Below, in pieces: positions 42,515-63,126 of a DNA stretch of 64,000 nt. Within the stretch, counting starts at the first letter, position 1. Each line of letters begins with the position of its first letter. Position numbers and translations under genes: made by a program. The stretch lies in sequence record MZ443783.1; one strand, given 5' to 3'. The notes beneath the pieces were generated by a model that was not told the DNA's origin, did no database searches, and worked only from the letters and a program-made list of their open reading frames with translations.

Positions 42515-43495
42515 ATGCGTTTTGGTTTCGCCTGCAAATTGCTTGACGCAAACAACAAACAACCATTCACGAATAAGAGCCTTAGCTATAAACATTTCTC
42601 TGCGCTGTCTGCTACTGACCAACATGCAAAACTTCTGGACGTTGTTACGCACAACCTGACTTCGTTGCTCAACATGATTAAACACGTTGGCCGACTGCGT
42701 ACAGACCTACGTATGTTTCGAATCACCAGTGAGTTGCTTCCACTCTACACTCACCCTAAAGTGTTTCACATGTACATGCGCCATGACGTTGTTACTCTTA
42801 CTGAGTCGCTACTCGCCTTGTGTGGTGAAGCGGCTCGACGCCATGACGTGCGATTATCATTTCACCCAGGTCAGTTCACGGTACTCGCATCTGACCGACC
42901 TGATGTTGTCCAGAACTCAATAGCCGAACTTGAGTACCATGCGTACTGTGCATATCACATGGGATATGGTCGCCGCTTCCAAGACTTCAAAATCAATATT
43001 CACCTTAGCGGTAGACTTGGTGCTTCTGGTTTCAGACAAGCGCATTCGAAACTTTCTGATCGCTGCCGAAACATGTTGACCGTAGAGAACGACGAAATCA
43101 CTTCCAGCCTCGAAGATGTTTTGTGTCTGGCAGACATATGCCCGATTGTCCTCGACATTCATCATCACTGGGTAATGACCAACGAATACATACAACCGAC
43201 CGACGATCGTGTTCAGCGTGTCATTGATTCTTGGCGCGGCGTAAGACCAGTAGCGCATTACTCTGTGTCGAAGCCTGAGTTCGTACCGTCGCGCGGACTC
43301 CCTGATCAGAACAAGCTGTCCGCTAATCGAATGCAGTTACGTGCTCATGCTGATTACTACCACAACGAAGACGTAAACGAGTGGGCCACTAGTTTCACTG
43401 ATTTTGACCTTATGTGTGAGTCAAAAGCGAAAAATAGGGCTAGACTGAAACTGGCGTGTTTTAGCGTCAACTCTGCAAATAATTGGACAAAATGA
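42515..43495 (+). CDS. uvsE: UV damage endonuclease UvsE/UvdE
   Basis: MRFGFAC, HNL, FRITSELLP, RLSFHPGQF.VL.S, INIH, LTVENDE, LDIHHH, H.S, AHAD, MCESKAK. Confidence 0.93.
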   Translation: MRFGFACKLLDANNKQPFTNKSLSYKHFSALSATDQHAKLLDVVTHNLTSLLNMIKHVGRLRTDLRMFRITSELLPLYTHPKVFHMYMRHDVVTLTESLLALCGEAARRHDVRLSFHPGQFTVLASDRPDVVQNSIAELEYHAYCAYHMGYGRRFQDFKINIHLSGRLGASGFRQAHSKLSDRCRNMLTVENDEITSSLEDVLCLADICPIVLDIHHHWVMTNEYIQPTDDRVQRVIDSWRGVRPVAHYSVSKPEFVPSRGLPDQNKLSANRMQLRAHADYYHNEDVNEWATSFTDFDLMCESKAKNRARLKLACFSVNSANNWTK

Positions 43496-43528
43496 GGCTT
43501 GTTTACGAAGGTAGCCCTGTGATACACT
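43475..43528 (+). promoter_or_regulatory. early promoter cassette 5
   Basis: GCAAATAATTGGACAAAATGA, 27 nt, TG-A-TACACT. Confidence 0.8.
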
Positions 43529-56262: not shown

Positions 56263-56315
56263 GCATAAAACTGGCTAAAATCGTGGTATCAATTTAAGCC
56301 CGACTGTGATATACT
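56263..56315 (+). promoter_or_regulatory. early promoter cassette 8
   Basis: GCATAAAACTGGCTAAAATCG, 26 nt, TG-A-TATACT. Confidence 0.85.
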
Positions 56316-57850: not shown

Positions 57851-58195
57851 ATGCGTTTCACCGAAGTATCAAAAGACGCACAGGTTGCGTTAATGTCTAG
57901 CGCACTTGCGGGAGTAATTGAGGCATTCACCCGCGAAGAAGATGATGAAGGCCGCAAGATTCTAGTTCTGGCCCTCAAGCAAGTCGGTCTGACGGTAGAT
58001 GAGTTCAGCGCACTTATCTCTGACTTGTCGCCAGAAGTTGAGCTTGAGATCGTTCGCGTTATGGAAGCTGCTGATGCCGAAGCGGATGAAGAAGACGCAG
58101 ACAGCGAACTCGACACGATGGAAGAGCGCCCAGGCAACCTGAACGATGCGCCGAACATTAATGCAGACGGCTGGGAGAATCTCAAAGATGAGTAG
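57851..58195 (+). CDS. hypothetical acidic protein (114 aa)
   Basis: AGGAGG RBS. Confidence 0.8.
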   Translation: MRFTEVSKDAQVALMSSALAGVIEAFTREEDDEGRKILVLALKQVGLTVDEFSALISDLSPEVELEIVRVMEAADAEADEEDADSELDTMEERPGNLNDAPNINADGWENLKDE

Positions 58196-58391
58196 TCAAG
58201 ATGATGTGAATGGTAGAATTGCTGCGGCCGACGAGCAACGTCAGAAAGAGCGTGAATCACGCTATGATGATTGGTCGATTGACGACCTGCGTGATGCTCT
58301 GCTTGAGAATGGTCTTGTATTTGACGGTGAAGACGTAGACGACTACAGCCGCGCAGACTGTATCAGACTGCTACTGGCTGATGGCTTCTAA
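58188..58391 (+). CDS. small acidic protein with a HeH-like module (67 aa)
   Basis: YDDWSIDDLRDALLENGL...SRADCIRLLL; GGGAG RBS. Confidence 0.7.
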   Translation: MSSQDDVNGRIAAADEQRQKERESRYDDWSIDDLRDALLENGLVFDGEDVDDYSRADCIRLLLADGF

Positions 58392-58444
58392 GCACAAAAC
58401 TGGACAAAATCGTGGTTGTCTCAAATAGCTGCCTGAACTATACT
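58392..58444 (+). promoter_or_regulatory. early promoter cassette 9
   Basis: GCACAAAACTGGACAAAATCG, 26 nt, TATACT. Confidence 0.85.
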
Positions 58445-58648: not shown

Positions 58649-59407
58649 ATGCCTACTACTTCACGTCCTAAGACAGAAGACAAGTTTTCCCGTGCTCGCG
58701 CCGCCAAAAACTCACCTGAGCGTCAGGCCGCGGCCACCAAGAAAACGCCACGAGGTCCTTCCTCGGTTCGTCCTAAATCAACGGCAGATCGTGAGCCTAA
58801 GATTCGTGACGAGGAGCGTGTGTACAATCTCGTACATGCAATTCTGAGCGCGTGGAAAGCTGATGTGGGTCATGCCGAACACACGGCAGCCTCTGCTGGT
58901 ATCATCAAAGTGTCTCGCCGTAAGATTGAAGGTGCCTTGCGTGACCTCAAGAATACGCGCTTCACTAAGATCCCGACGCTCATTAATGACGTCCTCGTGT
59001 ATAACGAAGTCTGCAATGAGTTCGGGCAGTGGGTATATGTCGAGCATGACAGTCCTGATTGGATTTTCGTGCGCTTGCCTGAAAACAGCACACCTGTGAT
59101 TCGTGCTGATATCAGCTACGACAAGACAGGCAAAACGTCTGCGTCTGTTTCGACTTCCAGCGAAGTGTTGCTGGAGGACTTTGACGAAGACGAAGAAGAT
59201 GAAATCCCTGAGAACGTCGAATATGACGACGAGGATGATTCTGATGTGAACGAAGAAGAGGACGACGAGGAGGAGTACCAGTCCTGGTCCCTCAGCCAAC
59301 TTCAAAACTTTGCTAAGGCCGAAGGTTACATCTGCATCAAAGATGAAGGTTGGAACGACCGCCAGACGCTTCTTGCTCGCATCCTGAATAAGGGAGCAAT
59401 CAAATGA
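58649..59407 (+). CDS. hypothetical protein (252 aa): basic N-terminus, acidic linker, C-terminal HeH-like module
   Basis: AAGGA RBS, TTG start. Confidence 0.78.
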   Translation: MPTTSRPKTEDKFSRARAAKNSPERQAAATKKTPRGPSSVRPKSTADREPKIRDEERVYNLVHAILSAWKADVGHAEHTAASAGIIKVSRRKIEGALRDLKNTRFTKIPTLINDVLVYNEVCNEFGQWVYVEHDSPDWIFVRLPENSTPVIRADISYDKTGKTSASVSTSSEVLLEDFDEDEEDEIPENVEYDDEDDSDVNEEEDDEEEYQSWSLSQLQNFAKAEGYICIKDEGWNDRQTLLARILNKGAIK

Positions 59408-59853
59408 GTCTGACTATTCGCTCTGCTGCCGAAACTGCTGCAATGATCATTGAAAACGTCACTCTCTACTCTCAAGAGAAGGGGCACGAATATCCGCTGC
59501 CGCGCTTTAAGATGCCCGACAATGCGATACGTCGAATCTCTGGTCATGCTCGCGTTCTGCCTGAAAGCTATATTGAGCAACTGTCTATCGAGCTGCAACA
59601 AATCGACTGGATGATGCTGCGGTATAACGCCGGCGAGTTCTTGTTCATGCACTACGATATCCCAAAGAACTGGACGCGACTGAGTGCGAAGCGTGTGGTC
59701 CCTAATGACGACCCTGCCGCTGAGTACGATACGTGGACGCTTCCTGAACTTCAGGGCTTCGCTCAACGTAACGACTTTTTGCAGCCTGACGAAGAGGGCT
59801 TCAACGATAGAGCGTCACTGATTCGCGCTATCATGCTAGGCGAGACCCATTGA
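59404..59853 (+). CDS. hypothetical protein (149 aa) with a C-terminal HeH-like module
   Basis: C-terminal ~40 aa clearly similar to that of 58649-59407. Confidence 0.8.
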   Translation: MSLTIRSAAETAAMIIENVTLYSQEKGHEYPLPRFKMPDNAIRRISGHARVLPESYIEQLSIELQQIDWMMLRYNAGEFLFMHYDIPKNWTRLSAKRVVPNDDPAAEYDTWTLPELQGFAQRNDFLQPDEEGFNDRASLIRAIMLGETH

Positions 59854-59872
59854 GTAGGGGGAAGATAATCGA

Positions 59873-60019
59873 ATGAACAAATCTAAGCGGGACGCAGAAG
59901 ACCCCGACATTGCTAAAATGCGCAAGCGTCTGGTAGATGCGAAAATCATCAAGCCAGAAGCTGCTGTGAAGCTGTCAAGCAATGACATTGTGAAGCTGTA
60001 CACTTACTACAGCGTATAA
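59873..60019 (+). CDS. small protein (48 aa)
   Basis: MNKSKRDAEDPDIAKMRKRLVDAKIIKPEAAVKLSSNDIVKLYTYYSV; GGGGGA upstream; below the track cutoff. Confidence 0.6.
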   Translation: MNKSKRDAEDPDIAKMRKRLVDAKIIKPEAAVKLSSNDIVKLYTYYSV

Positions 60020-60067: not shown

Positions 60068-60121
60068 GCAGAAAACTGGACAAAATCGTGGTTGTTATCT
60101 GAAAGCAACCTATGCTATACT
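60068..60121 (+). promoter_or_regulatory. early promoter cassette 10
   Basis: GCAGAAAACTGGACAAAATCG, 27 nt, TG-C-TATACT. Confidence 0.85.
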
Positions 60122-60184
60122 TAATGCAGACGCAATATCGCGTCGGCAAGCAAATCAAACAACAAATACTGAGGAGTATTAATC

Positions 60185-61792
60185 ATGGCACGTCTGGAAA
60201 CTAACACTAACCTGGTTGGCAAAACTATCATCCTGCTGAACGGCACCAAATCTAAAATCGAAGATGCAATCGCGTCTGGCTATAAAGTGAAGGGCCAGTC
60301 AAAACGTATCGCCACCCGCTGCGTCATCAAAGAAGGTTCTCACTTCCGCGAAATTGAGCGCATGAACATGAGCCAGCTGGAAGATACTGGTGAAGGTTAC
60401 GTTAAACTGAAAGATGCGAAAGCGTCTGGTAAGAAAGCTGGCGCGAAAGAGAAAGAGCCGAAAGCGTCTGGCAAGAAGACTGGCGGCAAAGCTACGGCCA
60501 AAGAGAAAGAGCCGAAAGTTCGCCGTAAGTCTTCTAAAGAGCAAGGCGATGAGTATCAGGCTCTGGCGAAAGAAATCATCAAAGGCGGCAAACGTGCTGC
60601 GCCAGTTGAAATCGACGAGATCGATGGCGACCTGACTGATACCGTTGCTCAACGTCTGGTAGACGTACTGAACAATACCGAAATCGCCAAGCTGTGCGCT
60701 GACAACAAAACGCCGATCGCTAACGCCATCGAAGTTGCTTACGGCGCTGAGTTCGCACCTGAAACAAACGTCATGCAGATCACGCTGAGCCTGCAATACG
60801 CGAAGCCTGTTAAAATGCAGTCATCTTCTACGCTGGAAAACGCCGATGCAATCGCGGCCCGTGCTAAGAAAATGATCGCGCCGAAGCTGTCTAAGAAAAT
60901 CGCTAAGGCGATTCGTGAAGCGTTCGGCCTGGAAGACGCCGCCGAGCTTGAAGCTGGTACCGTGTTGTTGTCTGACGGCGCTGAGTTCGTCTTCTGCGGC
61001 GAGAGCGCGAAGCACCTCGGCAAAGCGCTGCTGTATGTTGTAGAGACCGACAAGTTCAAATCTGTTGTAGGCTCTGCGCTGGCTGATTACGAAATTGATC
61101 AGGAAGAAGAAGAGGAAGAAGAGGAAGACCTCGAGGAAGAGGAGTCTGAGGAGGAAGAAGAAGAGGAGGAGGAGGAAGAAGAGGAGGAGGAAGAAGAAGA
61201 CGGCGAAGAAGAAGACGGCGAAGAAGACGACGGTGAGTCTGACGATACTGAATACCAGTATGTGGCCGTGACCAAAGATCATACCAACATGATCAACAAG
61301 AAAGTCACCGCTAAGTATCACGCCGCGCTGGCTGAGCGCTTCAACACAACCGAAGAAGCTCTGGTCCCTGGCCTCGTGTTGACTGACGGCGAAACAACGT
61401 TCGCTTACCTGGGCTGTGATAGCAAAGGTGGTCTGCTGGTCATCGACGTTGAAGCTGAGGAGAACGAAGAAGACGTTCTGCTGTATAGCAAAGCCGATAT
61501 CAAAGAACTGACCGACTTCAATCCTGTGCTGGATGACGTAGAAGGCGCTGCCGATGATGAAGGCGAAGAAGAAGACGGTGAAGAAGAAGACGGTGAAGAA
61601 GAAGACGGTGAAGAAGAAGACGGTGAAGAGGAAGAAGACGACGAAGACTTCGACTTCGATGATGTTCCTGCCGTTGACCTGAAAGATCTGTCCGAAGACG
61701 AACTGCGTGACCGTGTCGTTGAAGCCGGCCTGACCACCGTGCGTAAAGCTGACAAAATGAACGCGGCTCAACTGCGCAAGCTCCTGAAATAA
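60185..61792 (+). CDS. highly acidic multidomain protein (535 aa) with poly-E tracts
   Basis: GAGGAG RBS; two internal repeat domains; paralog of 61876-63126. Confidence 0.85.
   Translation: MARLETNTNLVGKTIILLNGTKSKIEDAIASGYKVKGQSKRIATRCVIKEGSHFREIERMNMSQLEDTGEGYVKLKDAKASGKKAGAKEKEPKASGKKTGGKATAKEKEPKVRRKSSKEQGDEYQALAKEIIKGGKRAAPVEIDEIDGDLTDTVAQRLVDVLNNTEIAKLCADNKTPIANAIEVAYGAEFAPETNVMQITLSLQYAKPVKMQSSSTLENADAIAARAKKMIAPKLSKKIAKAIREAFGLEDAAELEAGTVLLSDGAEFVFCGESAKHLGKALLYVVETDKFKSVVGSALADYEIDQEEEEEEEEDLEEEESEEEEEEEEEEEEEEEEEDGEEEDGEEDDGESDDTEYQYVAVTKDHTNMINKKVTAKYHAALAERFNTTEEALVPGLVLTDGETTFAYLGCDSKGGLLVIDVEAEENEEDVLLYSKADIKELTDFNPVLDDVEGAADDEGEEEDGEEEDGEEEDGEEEDGEEEEDDEDFDFDDVPAVDLKDLSEDELRDRVVEAGLTTVRKADKMNAAQLRKLLK
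61565..61624 (+). repeat. coding tandem repeat (GAAGAAGAAGACGGT)x4 = (EEEDG)4
   Basis: Four perfect 15-bp units; related units at 61190-61234. Confidence 0.9.
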
Positions 61793-61875
61793 ACCTGTAG
61801 TATCGCAACACTGAATAATGTACGCCTCAGACAGGGGCGTACATCTGACAACTAAGCTGATTGAGGAATCACACT

Positions 61876-63126
61876 ATGTCAAACGCAAACAAAATTCTGC
61901 TTAACGCCCGTGTTCGTCGTACTGATGGCACCATCACTTACATCAACAAAGTAAACGCTAACGGTTATAGCACCGACGCGAAAGGCCCGCAGATTCCTGT
62001 GAAGCGCATTGTGTTCGCAGGCAAAACGCTGAAAGAGATTGAACAGCCATTCGCAAAAGGCGAGTACGTGATTGTGCAGGGTGTCGCTGTGAAGTTGAAC
62101 AAGCGCCAGCAACGTGAACTGGCTGATGGTACTCTCGACGAGAAAGCGCTGCGTCCTGAGTTTGGCCGTTTGGTTACCATCGACCCTGAAACAGGCAAAG
62201 CAACTGACGGCAAGAAAGTGAAGCCGAAAGCTGACAAGAAAGACGGTGGCCTGAAAGCTACGCGCAAGCATAGCGGCGATACCAGCACGAAGAAAGAGCG
62301 CAAAGCTGAGAAGGCGAATCTGAAAGACGACCTTGACTTCATTCAGTCTGACAAGATTGACCGTAAAGCCGAACTCGTCAAGCTCCTCGATGGCTCTATC
62401 GCTGACGCGAATACGAAAGAGCGCCGTAAGCAATTGTCCGAAGCGTTTGACATGGACTGGAAAGATCTTAAAAAGCACGGCGGTAAAGGTGTTGTCAAAC
62501 ATCTCGGCCGCAAGGCAGCACAAAGCGCCGTTGACCGTCTGTCTGCTACGCTGACGCAAGACGCATTCATCAAACAAATGCCGACTGAGTTGAAGCGCCT
62601 GATTCAAGACCGTCGTCTGGTTCTGAATAAGCGTCAGATTGAAGCTGTACTCTCTGCATTGGGTCTGGACGTTAAGTTCTACGCCATCGCAATGCAAACG
62701 CTGCTGGGTAACCTGTCGCTCGCTGTAGACGACACGGCCGTGAATCCCAAAGCAGGTAAGAAAGCAAAGAAGCGCAAACCAGCAAAGCCTGAGTATGCGT
62801 CTGATAAAGAAATAAAGCGCCGTATCAAAAAGATGAAAGTCAGTTTGATCATGCCTCCTAAGAGCGAAATCAAAACGGCTAAAGCTCACCTGAAACAAGC
62901 GAAAGCCATTCTCGCCGACAAGCTGGGTATCTCGGCGAAAGATATCAAGCGCGGTCTGATCGTGCATCATAAGAACGGCGTTGACTACATGTTCGTTGCG
63001 TGTGACCTGCGCGGACCAATCTTCATCGACAAAGATGGTGATCCGTCTGTGTATACCTACGCCAACCTCGAATCGACTTTCGACTTCACGCTGGCGAAAT
63101 CTTCTGAGCTGGATGAGGCTGTATGA
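61876..63126 (+). CDS. basic Lys-rich protein, paralog of 60185-61792
   Basis: GAGG RBS hairpin before ATG 61876; shared N- and C-terminal domains. Confidence 0.85.
   Translation: MSNANKILLNARVRRTDGTITYINKVNANGYSTDAKGPQIPVKRIVFAGKTLKEIEQPFAKGEYVIVQGVAVKLNKRQQRELADGTLDEKALRPEFGRLVTIDPETGKATDGKKVKPKADKKDGGLKATRKHSGDTSTKKERKAEKANLKDDLDFIQSDKIDRKAELVKLLDGSIADANTKERRKQLSEAFDMDWKDLKKHGGKGVVKHLGRKAAQSAVDRLSATLTQDAFIKQMPTELKRLIQDRRLVLNKRQIEAVLSALGLDVKFYAIAMQTLLGNLSLAVDDTAVNPKAGKKAKKRKPAKPEYASDKEIKRRIKKMKVSLIMPPKSEIKTAKAHLKQAKAILADKLGISAKDIKRGLIVHHKNGVDYMFVACDLRGPIFIDKDGDPSVYTYANLESTFDFTLAKSSELDEAV

Follow-up and report, generated by a model that had tools for sequence, protein, structure and literature searches.

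Near the end of a 64,000-nucleotide (nt) stretch of sequence record MZ443783.1, which as a whole we call the window, an acidic and a basic protein are encoded side by side. The question this locus raises is whether the two proteins are related and what such a pair could do in a phage. All positions given here are those of the window, obtained by subtracting 186,000 from the record position. The window matches Erwinia phage pEa_SNUABM_28 (MZ443783.1, 267,143 bp, Alexandravirus, host Erwinia amylovora) at 100% identity, and GenBank labels 28 of the 28 genes surrounding the pair as “hypothetical protein.” An earlier note, written from the letters alone, had drawn attention to neighboring open reading frames of opposite charge at this place. 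Both are present, as are all the peptides that it quoted from them. Gene A (60185–61792, plus strand; GenBank pEaSNUABM28_00327) codes for a modular protein of 535 amino acids (aa) with an isoelectric point (pI) of 4.31, 27% Asp plus Glu, and a net charge of −78. Gene B (61876–63126, plus strand; pEaSNUABM28_00328) codes for a modular protein of 416 aa with a pI of 9.85, 21% Lys plus Arg, and a net charge of +31. The listed reading frame of gene B opens at TTG 61861; since ATG 61876 (MSNANK...) is the start in 23 of 23 aligned homologs and the GenBank coding sequence begins there as well, we use the latter coordinates and length.

We find that A and B are tandem paralogs of ancient divergence, which share a predicted small barrel at the N terminus and a helix-capped barrel referred to here as the C-domain. 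As to function, the reading that we favor, though tentatively, is that they are a nucleic acid– or nucleoid-directed pair, in which B would be a polycationic binder and A a relative of it in which poly-Glu tails would play the part of an autoinhibitor or a DNA mimic.

Relationship between proteins A and B

Pairwise BLASTP of A against B returned no significant similarity (best E value of ~6), with the weak alignments falling where the earlier note had placed shared domains. We gathered 35 A-family and 40 B-family cluster representatives, 22 and 23 of which were aligned to obtain profiles. In the whole-protein profile-profile comparison, the N-terminal domains (N-domains) were paired at 91.9% probability (E = 7e-7). 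When individual domains were compared with hhalign, the N-domain of A matched that of B at 95.3% probability (E = 2.4e-8). The two C-domain copies of A, C1 and C2, matched each other at 95.5% (E = 1.4e-8), and the C-domain of B (B-C) was matched by C2 at 84.7% (E = 6.7e-6) and by C1 at 51.7% (E = 1.5e-4). The corresponding scores, 45.7, 47.7, 34.7, and 27.3, were 7 to 16 standard deviations above those of a column-shuffle control (11 ± 2.4, with a maximum of 22; 100 shuffles per comparison), and none of the shuffles attained the real value; for C2 versus B-C, z was ~9. Internal controls for kinship were null: N-domains compared with C-domains and the C-terminal motif of A compared with the middle part of B scored ~10, and the middle part of A compared with B-C was null as well. 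The middle regions of A and B, for which the profile comparison gave 0.1% probability, are not similar to each other.

The earlier note had claimed that both the N-domains and the C-domains are shared and had named in advance a nonsignificant profile alignment as the result that would speak against its idea. For both domains the alignment proved significant and lay far above the shuffles, and structural cross-matches agree. Structures were predicted, and folds searched, for the two full-length proteins. For B, the prediction was made on P0003, a 90%-identity cluster representative from pEa_SNUABM_16 that is one residue off the B protein of the window (Ile for Thr past the N-domain). In the AlphaFold2 models, the order of strands and helices is the same in the two N-domains, which are ~25% identical, and in the three C-domains. 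With the A model as a query, Foldseek matched the B orthologs of phages Yoloswag (E = 1.2e-10) and JA13 (E = 3.8e-6); with the B model as a query, it matched the A-type protein of phage NCTB (E = 3.5e-7). Likewise, when the B-family profile was searched against 1.84 billion proteins, it retrieved the acidic A-type protein P0088 through the N-domain of the latter (E = 3.5e-6).

Throughout the 267-kb genome, the N-domain is present in exactly two copies and the C-domain in exactly three, all of them within A and B. In a maximum-likelihood tree of 67 C-domain copies, C1 forms one clade with 100/100 support and B-C forms another; the tree has three groups and is unrooted, and the order of duplications is not derivable from it. 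Since the copies form their own 100/100 clades, the duplications are older than the phages sampled, and each copy has been retained without homogenization.

PHROGs holds the proteins as two separate families, both labeled “unknown function”: phrog_33433 matches A over residues 1 to 534 (E = 1.2e-199), and phrog_32501 matches B over residues 4 to 421 (E = 1.1e-164), in both cases as a full-length hidden Markov model (HMM) match. Linking N- and C-domains are not recorded there, and the connection between phrog_33433 and phrog_32501 appears not to have been recorded before.

Domain architecture and charge

All parts of A and B described below are on the plus strand. Protein A opens with the N-domain (60185–60412, aa 1 to 76), a small β domain of net charge +5 with modeled strands at residues 14 to 57 and a hairpin at residues 65 to 75; with a mean pairwise identity of 0.78, it is the best-conserved segment of A. 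A basic Lys/Ala/Pro/Gly-rich linker follows (60413–60604, aa 77 to 140), which is predicted to be disordered [predicted local distance difference test score (pLDDT) < 50] and carries a net charge of ~+12 (+10 to +18 over the family). The middle α+β domain (60605–60829, aa 141 to 215), modeled as a helix at residues 148 to 164 and two long strands at 181 to 206, is private to the A family. Its fold matches are weak (Z ≤ 4.7); as a guide to noise in structural searches, Z values below 7 to 8 are common by chance.

The remainder of A is strongly acidic. As the earlier note had it, two C-domain copies are parted by poly-Glu: C1 (60830–61087, aa 216 to 301), modeled as a helix and a small β barrel, and C2 (61253–61534, aa 357 to 450), which of the copies in A is nearest to B-C, flank a 55-aa tract. 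This first acidic tract (61088–61252, aa 302 to 356) is poly-Glu, disordered, and has a net charge of ~−33; in homologs it is 28 to 60 aa long with a net charge of −19 to −46. The second tract (61535–61666, aa 451 to 494) consists of Glu/Asp/Gly repeats with a net charge of ~−29 (30 to 51 aa and −19 to −36 in homologs) and ends in EDFDFD, in which F489, F491, and D493 are invariant among 22 homologs. Both tracts are coded by GAA/GAG-type repeats with periods of 3 and 15 nt, including a 15-nt tandem repeat in tract 2. Protein A closes with a predicted helix-extended-helix (HeH; SAP-like) motif (61667–61789, aa 495 to 535), modeled as helices at residues 504 to 513, 519 to 523, and 527 to 534 with pLDDT of 83 to 86; no specific structural match was found for this part. 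The last 40 residues of A have the spacing L..L...ELR......GL......KM....L..LL, which we take to be typical of SAP/HeH/Rho-N motifs. Pfam SAP scored 14.4 bits on the C terminus of A against a cut-off of 23.9 (E = 0.031, 13 residues), no Pfam model for SAP, HeH, or Rho_N reached its gathering score, and full-length A has no SAP match. The charge of A is thus arranged in blocks, basic in the first quarter and strongly acidic in the remainder, and its acidic residues sit in segments with pLDDT < 50.

Protein B begins with an N-region (61876–62175, aa 1 to 100; net charge of +7; pLDDT of 84 to 89), in which a barrel homologous to the A N-domain (aa 4 to 56) is followed by a second, KOW-like hairpin/helix unit. 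Its N-domain is the best-conserved part of B (mean pairwise identity of 0.68). The Lys-rich linkers that had been noticed in B are at aa 101 to 160 (linker 1, 62176–62355; disordered, with pLDDT < 50 at residues 112 to 160) and at aa 286 to 309 (linker 2, 62731–62802). Across the family, linker 1 varies from 18 to 116 aa in length and from +1 to +8 in charge. Between the linkers there is a helical middle domain (62356–62730, aa 161 to 285), private to the B family and present also in the shorter Salmondvirus B proteins, whose fold matches are generic helical bundles (Z ≤ 5.7). The C-domain, modeled as a long helix and a small β barrel, ends the protein (62803–63123, aa 310 to 416; net charge of +6; pLDDT of 85 to 91). 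Net charge is positive in every segment of B. Segment charges hold in 22 A and 23 B homologs, although linker lengths vary and linker sequences are poorly conserved.

Conservation of the pair in relatives

The family is narrow: among 1.84 billion proteins, 18 representatives were found at E ≤ 0.001, one of them a spurious repeat protein. Metagenomic relatives are modular and include proteins with N- and C-domains only (251 to 263 aa), with the N-domain and the helical domain only (~310 to 330 aa), with a lone C-domain (112 aa), and with two to three C-domains (288 aa). Being found both alone and repeated, the C-domain behaves like a mobile module in its own right. Stand-alone C-domain proteins of ~112 to 119 aa include BFVD A0A7T8IWD4 from pEa_SNUABM_5 (119 aa), and P0087 and P0090 cover the lone and 288-aa forms.

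With tblastn, 58 phage records matched A and 51 matched B, with hosts Erwinia, Dickeya, and Yersinia, plus phage NCTB. Foldseek points to a further relative of 440 aa in Pseudomonas phage PaBG (E = 3.4e-6). One B-family protein, P0025, is assigned to Salmonella enterica serovar Infantis. The contig that encodes it, 266,333 bp in length, probably represents a related jumbo phage, either carried in the bacterial isolate or contaminating its assembly.

To describe the pairing, 23 loci from IMG/VR, GenBank, and metagenomes were scored with domain HMMs. At 20 of them, an acidic N-C-C-HeH protein (net charge of −56 to −83) is followed, no more than ~80 nt away, by a basic protein (+27 to +35) that has N- and C-domains or the N-domain alone. 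Paired loci include those of named phages from three genera (Sasquatchvirus Y3, Salmondvirus JA29, and Alexandravirus). The other three (NCTB, L002, and L032) belong to distant relatives and carry an acidic A type without B, and Salmondvirus B has no shared C-domain; A thus does not strictly need B.

These exceptions bear on an alternative according to which A and B are independent accessory proteins. Under it, A would be an early host-takeover or antidefense DNA mimic that traps restriction enzymes, H-NS, or HU, B would have a separate role, and adjacency would reflect tandem duplication only. We regard this as unlikely, though worth keeping in mind. In its favor, A occurs without B in the three loci named, the acidic tracts keep charge rather than sequence, and HU-binding acidic proteins exist, as described for DMP12 (PMC3643605) and MsyB (bioRxiv 10.1101/2025.02.25.640118). 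It is opposed by the A-then-B order and opposite charges at 20 of 23 loci in several genera, which exceed duplication inertia, and by the fact that A is similar to no known DNA mimic in Pfam, PHROGs, or the fold search. Moreover, phage DNA mimics so far are small folded proteins, unlike the multidomain 535-aa A.

Expression signals and the operon

A promoter-like cassette precedes gene A (60072–60121, plus strand). A consensus scan shows it to consist of a 20-bp upstream element, AAAACTGGNCAAAATCGTGG (60072–60091), fused to a σ70-like site with TTGTTA (60092–60097), an 18-nt spacer, and a TG-extended TATACT (60116–60121). The AAAACTGGNCAAAATCGTGG element has three copies in the 267-kb genome (56267, 58396, and 60072), within 4 kb of each other at the head of a cluster of genes for highly charged proteins. 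The three cassette copies (56267–56286, 58396–58444, and 60072–60121) combine it with a TTGTnn box, 17 to 18 nt, and TATACT, and a diverged fourth copy is found at 43499 (43474–43528). Tandem copies of the cassette are kept upstream of the A orthologs in Y3 and JA29. We infer that the cassette acts as a promoter; the AAAACTGGNCAAAATCGTGG element could serve as an UP element or be recognized by a dedicated regulator.

Downstream of the cassette, a 5′ leader hairpin is predicted at 60126–60147 (plus strand), near the putative transcript start; the RNA fold of 60126–60190 has an energy of −15.1 kcal/mol (z = −3.4). For both genes the earlier note had described Shine-Dalgarno sequences in hairpins, and this is borne out on folding. 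At gene A, GAGG is in the loop of a 6-bp hairpin (60165–60180, plus strand) 4 nt before the ATG, and at gene B, it is in the loop of a 5-bp hairpin (61858–61871, plus strand), whose layout is the same in Y3 and in contig L003 with different stem sequences. In total, 11 plus-strand genes have GAGG in the loop of a 4- to 6-bp hairpin located 2 to 9 nt upstream of the ATG (24765, 25237, 29339, 29855, 30237, 30657, 45695, 56353, 57840, 60171, and 61863), compared to none on the minus strand and a shuffle mean of ~1.

Between A and B, RNA folding gives a GC-rich 11-bp hairpin with no U-tract (61818–61844, plus strand), which is possibly a leaky terminator or an mRNA stabilizer. Y3, JA29, and contig L003 each have a strong hairpin at the corresponding place, with a different sequence. 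Together with the promoter-like cassette that A has to itself, a conserved hairpin past the A stop codon could allow A to be expressed above B, which is a point for independent roles of the two proteins.

The consensus scan revealed no promoter-like site between A and B. The stop codon of gene B overlaps the next ATG at 63123, and the following genes, coding for proteins of 127, 153, 426 (pI 9.4), and 998 aa (net charge of −190), overlap or abut up to a terminator-like hairpin after the 998-aa gene. Because no promoter-like site separates A from B and downstream starts overlap, the two look like the first genes of an operon whose products are extremely charged.

A second motif, the 9-mer ATCTGTAAA, has 22 copies in the genome, always on the local gene strand, compared to none for a reversed-pattern control. 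Its sites include 2878, 7419 (minus strand), 14311, and 20553 in the window and, among others, record positions 254302, 254602, 255133, 255811, and 255867. It is often located just 5′ of start codons, some of them in the latter half of the charged cluster. We consider it a candidate phage-specific promoter motif, perhaps middle or late.

Genomic setting and the charged cluster

In phage Y3, which is better annotated, the orthologs of A and B (Y3_315 and Y3_316) belong to a plus-strand block with dUTPase and lytic transglycosylase genes upstream of them; the block stops short of gyrase B. The Y3 genes for head and tail are ~140 kb away on the other strand, and the Y3 record, which uses virion labels elsewhere, gives A and B none and calls them hypothetical. 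By genomic setting, A and B look like nonstructural proteins.

The same evidence bears on the possibility that they are virion-internal or ejected proteins, with B packaged together with DNA like the internal proteins of T4 and A serving as a scaffold or core protein or as a processed, propeptide-rich protein. Giant phages do package paralogous, highly charged head proteins, and the middle domain of A weakly matches baseplate proteins of Mu, phi812, phiKZ, and A-1(L). These matches are at noise level (Z of 3.8 to 4.7). Packaging is further opposed by the distance to the structural module, which is encoded on the other strand, by the replication-type genes next to the pair, and by the missing virion labels. 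In addition, the 14 abundant virion proteins of PaBG include no ~48-kDa unknown that would fit its putative 440-aa relative, which is weak evidence. We hold a virion role to be quite improbable.

The cluster headed by A and B contains, beside the members of the operon, a 257-aa protein with 46% Asp plus Glu (69923–70696) and Lys-rich proteins with a pI of 10. No family match was obtained for the basic 426-aa and the 998-aa proteins (L001 12770–17071, equal to 63954–68255 in window numbering), and in phage NCTB homologs of the 127- and 426-aa genes come directly after the A-type gene. The 257-aa protein (L001 18739–19512) gives two matches to the HMM of the A HeH motif (E = 1e-7 and 2e-3). The EDFDFD sequence of A (61643–61660) is also found at the extreme C terminus of a 172-aa Lys-rich protein (pI 10, 30% Lys plus Arg; motif at L001 20223–20249, ~71407–71433 in window numbering). 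EDFDFD could be a shared short docking motif recalling SSB or gp2.5 tails.

On the other side of A, acidic neighbors (58188–58391, 58649–59407, and 59404–59853) end in or contain an HeH-like W/L-x-x-x-L...G...L pattern, with weak matches to Pfam Ish1 (E of ~1e-3). In a relative from a phyllosphere metagenome (run X1), 59145–59897 is replaced by 88 other letters. This segment spans the end of a 252-aa gene and an entire 149-aa HeH gene, and Y3 lacks both genes. The HeH genes upstream of A thus form an indel-prone accessory patch.

The composition of the cluster raises the alternative of a phase-separated compartment, in which polyanionic A, polycationic B, and the hyper-charged proteins of the operon would form a coacervate, resembling a viral factory or chromatin, in a jumbo phage lacking a protein nucleus. 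A and B do join long, oppositely charged disordered tracts to folded modules of the interaction type, and the cluster that they head contains the 998-aa protein of net charge −190, the 257-aa protein with its 46% acidic residues, and the Lys-rich proteins of pI 10. A precedent is provided by phage SPO1, whose program is driven by phase separation (PMC13401047). The case is made from composition, and many charged disordered proteins stay unseparated in cells; the words histone, condensate, acidic, and DNA mimic do not occur in a 2026 jumbo-phage review. A compartment of this kind seems rather improbable to us. A more extended version would have A, B, and the hyper-charged proteins of the ~14-kb cluster act together as polyanions and polycations that enclose DNA in a compartment resembling chromatin or a coacervate, with N- and C-domains as “stickers” and the tracts as “spacers.” That jumbo phages of the PaBG/Y3/Alexandra lineage have such a compartment, free of a protein shell, in place of a phage nucleus is a long shot.

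Domain identity and possible function

In Pfam, NCBIfam, and PDB-sequence searches, no family was found for A, B, or six neighbor proteins, and PHROGs returned families of “unknown function” only. Nucleoid-associated and histone-like families (HU/IHF, H-NS, Fis, histone fold, and Sul7d/Cren7) gave no match in Pfam, NCBIfam, PDB sequences, or fold searches, and Pfam showed no match to HMG-box, nucleoplasmin, or NAP in A or B. The C-domains resemble MscS β-domain, Tudor, CarD, KOW, and Sds3 capped-Tudor structures at Z of 4.0 to 5.2, and the N-domain resembles MTH1859 at Z of 3.9, both in the noise range. Foldseek against the PDB gave a best E value of 0.28, with Lsm/Sm entries at E of ~1. The best matches in the exhaustive VIA fold search (Z = 5.7) were to pyrin domains for the helical part of B and to a mitoribosomal protein for C2 of A, and we dismissed them as generic. 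ESM Atlas leads (DUF3127/SSB-like features below 0.9, TM-score below 0.5) were not confirmed by Pfam. The modeled folds resemble generic small barrels of the SH3/Tudor/KOW type. Since no named family matches, we describe the domains as two orphan small-barrel domains and an HeH-like motif.

These resemblances are what an alternative role in transcription would build on. KOW- or Tudor-like barrels would then attach the proteins to RNA polymerase or the ribosome, and modulation of that machine would be the task of the charged tails. The B-family profile weakly matches the KOW ribosomal protein uL24 (E = 0.0075), and the C-domain models are weakly similar to CarD/CdnL, to the Tudor-like RNA polymerase–binding domains of Mfd and UvrD, and to Spt5 KOW domains (Z of 4.0 to 4.5). 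All of these matches are at noise level, small barrels are ubiquitous, and Pfam KOW and CarD do not match. We consider transcription-associated factors very unlikely.

We return to the tentative reading of A and B as a nucleic acid– or nucleoid-directed pair. The conserved adjacency and opposite charge (20 of 23 loci), the nonstructural context, and the block charge of A are compatible with a DNA binder and its acidic partner, or with a condensate-forming pair, as the earlier note had suggested. In such a scheme, A and B would probably be expressed from a host-type (σ70-like) promoter as the first two genes of the operon. B, positive in all its segments and provided with Lys-rich disordered linkers, would bind phage or host DNA nonspecifically. 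In A, a basic N-terminal part homologous to that of B (N-domain, +5; linker, +12) would be tethered to ~100 residues of poly-Glu/Asp tails, EDFDFD, and the HeH motif. The tails would serve as an intramolecular or intermolecular DNA mimic. They might shield the basic part of A itself, act on B as a buffer or chaperone, or be competitors of polycationic proteins that bind DNA, for example those of the host nucleoid. Nucleic acid binding, contact between A and B, the timing of expression, and an effect on the nucleoid are what we infer from genome and model features.

Several observations weigh against this reading, beginning with the loci that lack B and the Salmondvirus B proteins without the C-domain, which argue against an obligate pair. 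In Pfam, PHROGs, NCBIfam, and PDB sequences, neither A nor B matches a known family of nucleic acid binders, histone-like proteins, chaperones, or DNA mimics, and A has no DNA-mimic match in the fold search. All fold matches have Z < 6, correspond to generic small barrels, and are below the noise guide. The C-domain is unlikely to be a common DNA-binding surface because its net charge differs among copies (+6 in B-C, −1 and −10 in the others). The distant A ortholog of L002 sits behind ATCTGTAAA, the other promoter-like motif. Last, a wastewater metatranscriptome (run X2) has 150- to 250-nt contigs that match A and B and that may be DNA carry-over.

Significance and comparison with known systems

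We found no paper on the A and B proteins; the sole paper naming pEa_SNUABM_28 is a review. Most jumbo phage genes have no known function, and the present analysis joins two “unknown” PHROG families as one modular superfamily of two orphan domains. It also reveals an acidic/basic pair that is kept adjacent, with its charge pattern intact, in phages of plant pathogens (Alexandravirus, Sasquatchvirus, Salmondvirus, Yoloswag, and related metagenomic contigs). If A and B are merely ordinary accessory proteins, a modest gain in annotation is left. Should DNA or the host nucleoid prove to be its target, the pair would represent a new phage route to DNA organization or host takeover. Both proteins are small, look soluble, and can be divided into domains, which makes the idea directly testable.

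The arrangement of a basic binder with an acidic tail is shared by SSB, T7 gp2.5, HMGB1, and histone chaperones. Bacterial SSB and T7 gp2.5 have acidic-aromatic tail tips, which EDFDFD of A recalls. In HMGB1 and nucleoplasmin-type chaperones, long Asp/Glu tracts compete with DNA for basic proteins or domains. These are eukaryotic families, and A has no HMG-box, nucleoplasmin, or NAP match.

Hfq, SSB, and T7 gp2.5 are small Sm/SH3- or OB-type barrels that bind nucleic acid. In Hfq, binding is reported to be autoregulated by a disordered acidic tail mimicking nucleic acid (PMC5606850). Homology of A to Hfq, SSB, or T7 gp2.5 is not detectable, and the tails of A differ in being far longer, internal, and followed by the HeH motif.

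The DNA mimics T7 Ocr, ArdA, DMP12, and MsyB are, like A, strongly acidic, and they occupy the DNA-binding sites of restriction enzymes or HU, the latter being bound by DMP12 and MsyB as cited above. They differ from A in having compact folds with ordered charge arrays, whereas the charge of A is in disordered repeats.

In phi29 p6, a disordered acidic tail shields a basic patch and lowers DNA affinity (PMC10899789). It is a nonstructural phage protein, as A probably is, and A has the same basic-then-acidic order. The p6 protein differs in size (~100 aa), in its ~24-residue tail, and in fold; A carries ~100 acidic residues, divided between two tracts, has additional domains, and is accompanied by a separate basic paralog, and no sequence or fold similarity between the two was found. 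If our reading of the pair is true, A and B would provide a bacterial-virus case of the logic by which a basic binder is combined with an acidic tail or chaperone, as in phi29 p6, Hfq, SSB, and eukaryotic chromatin.

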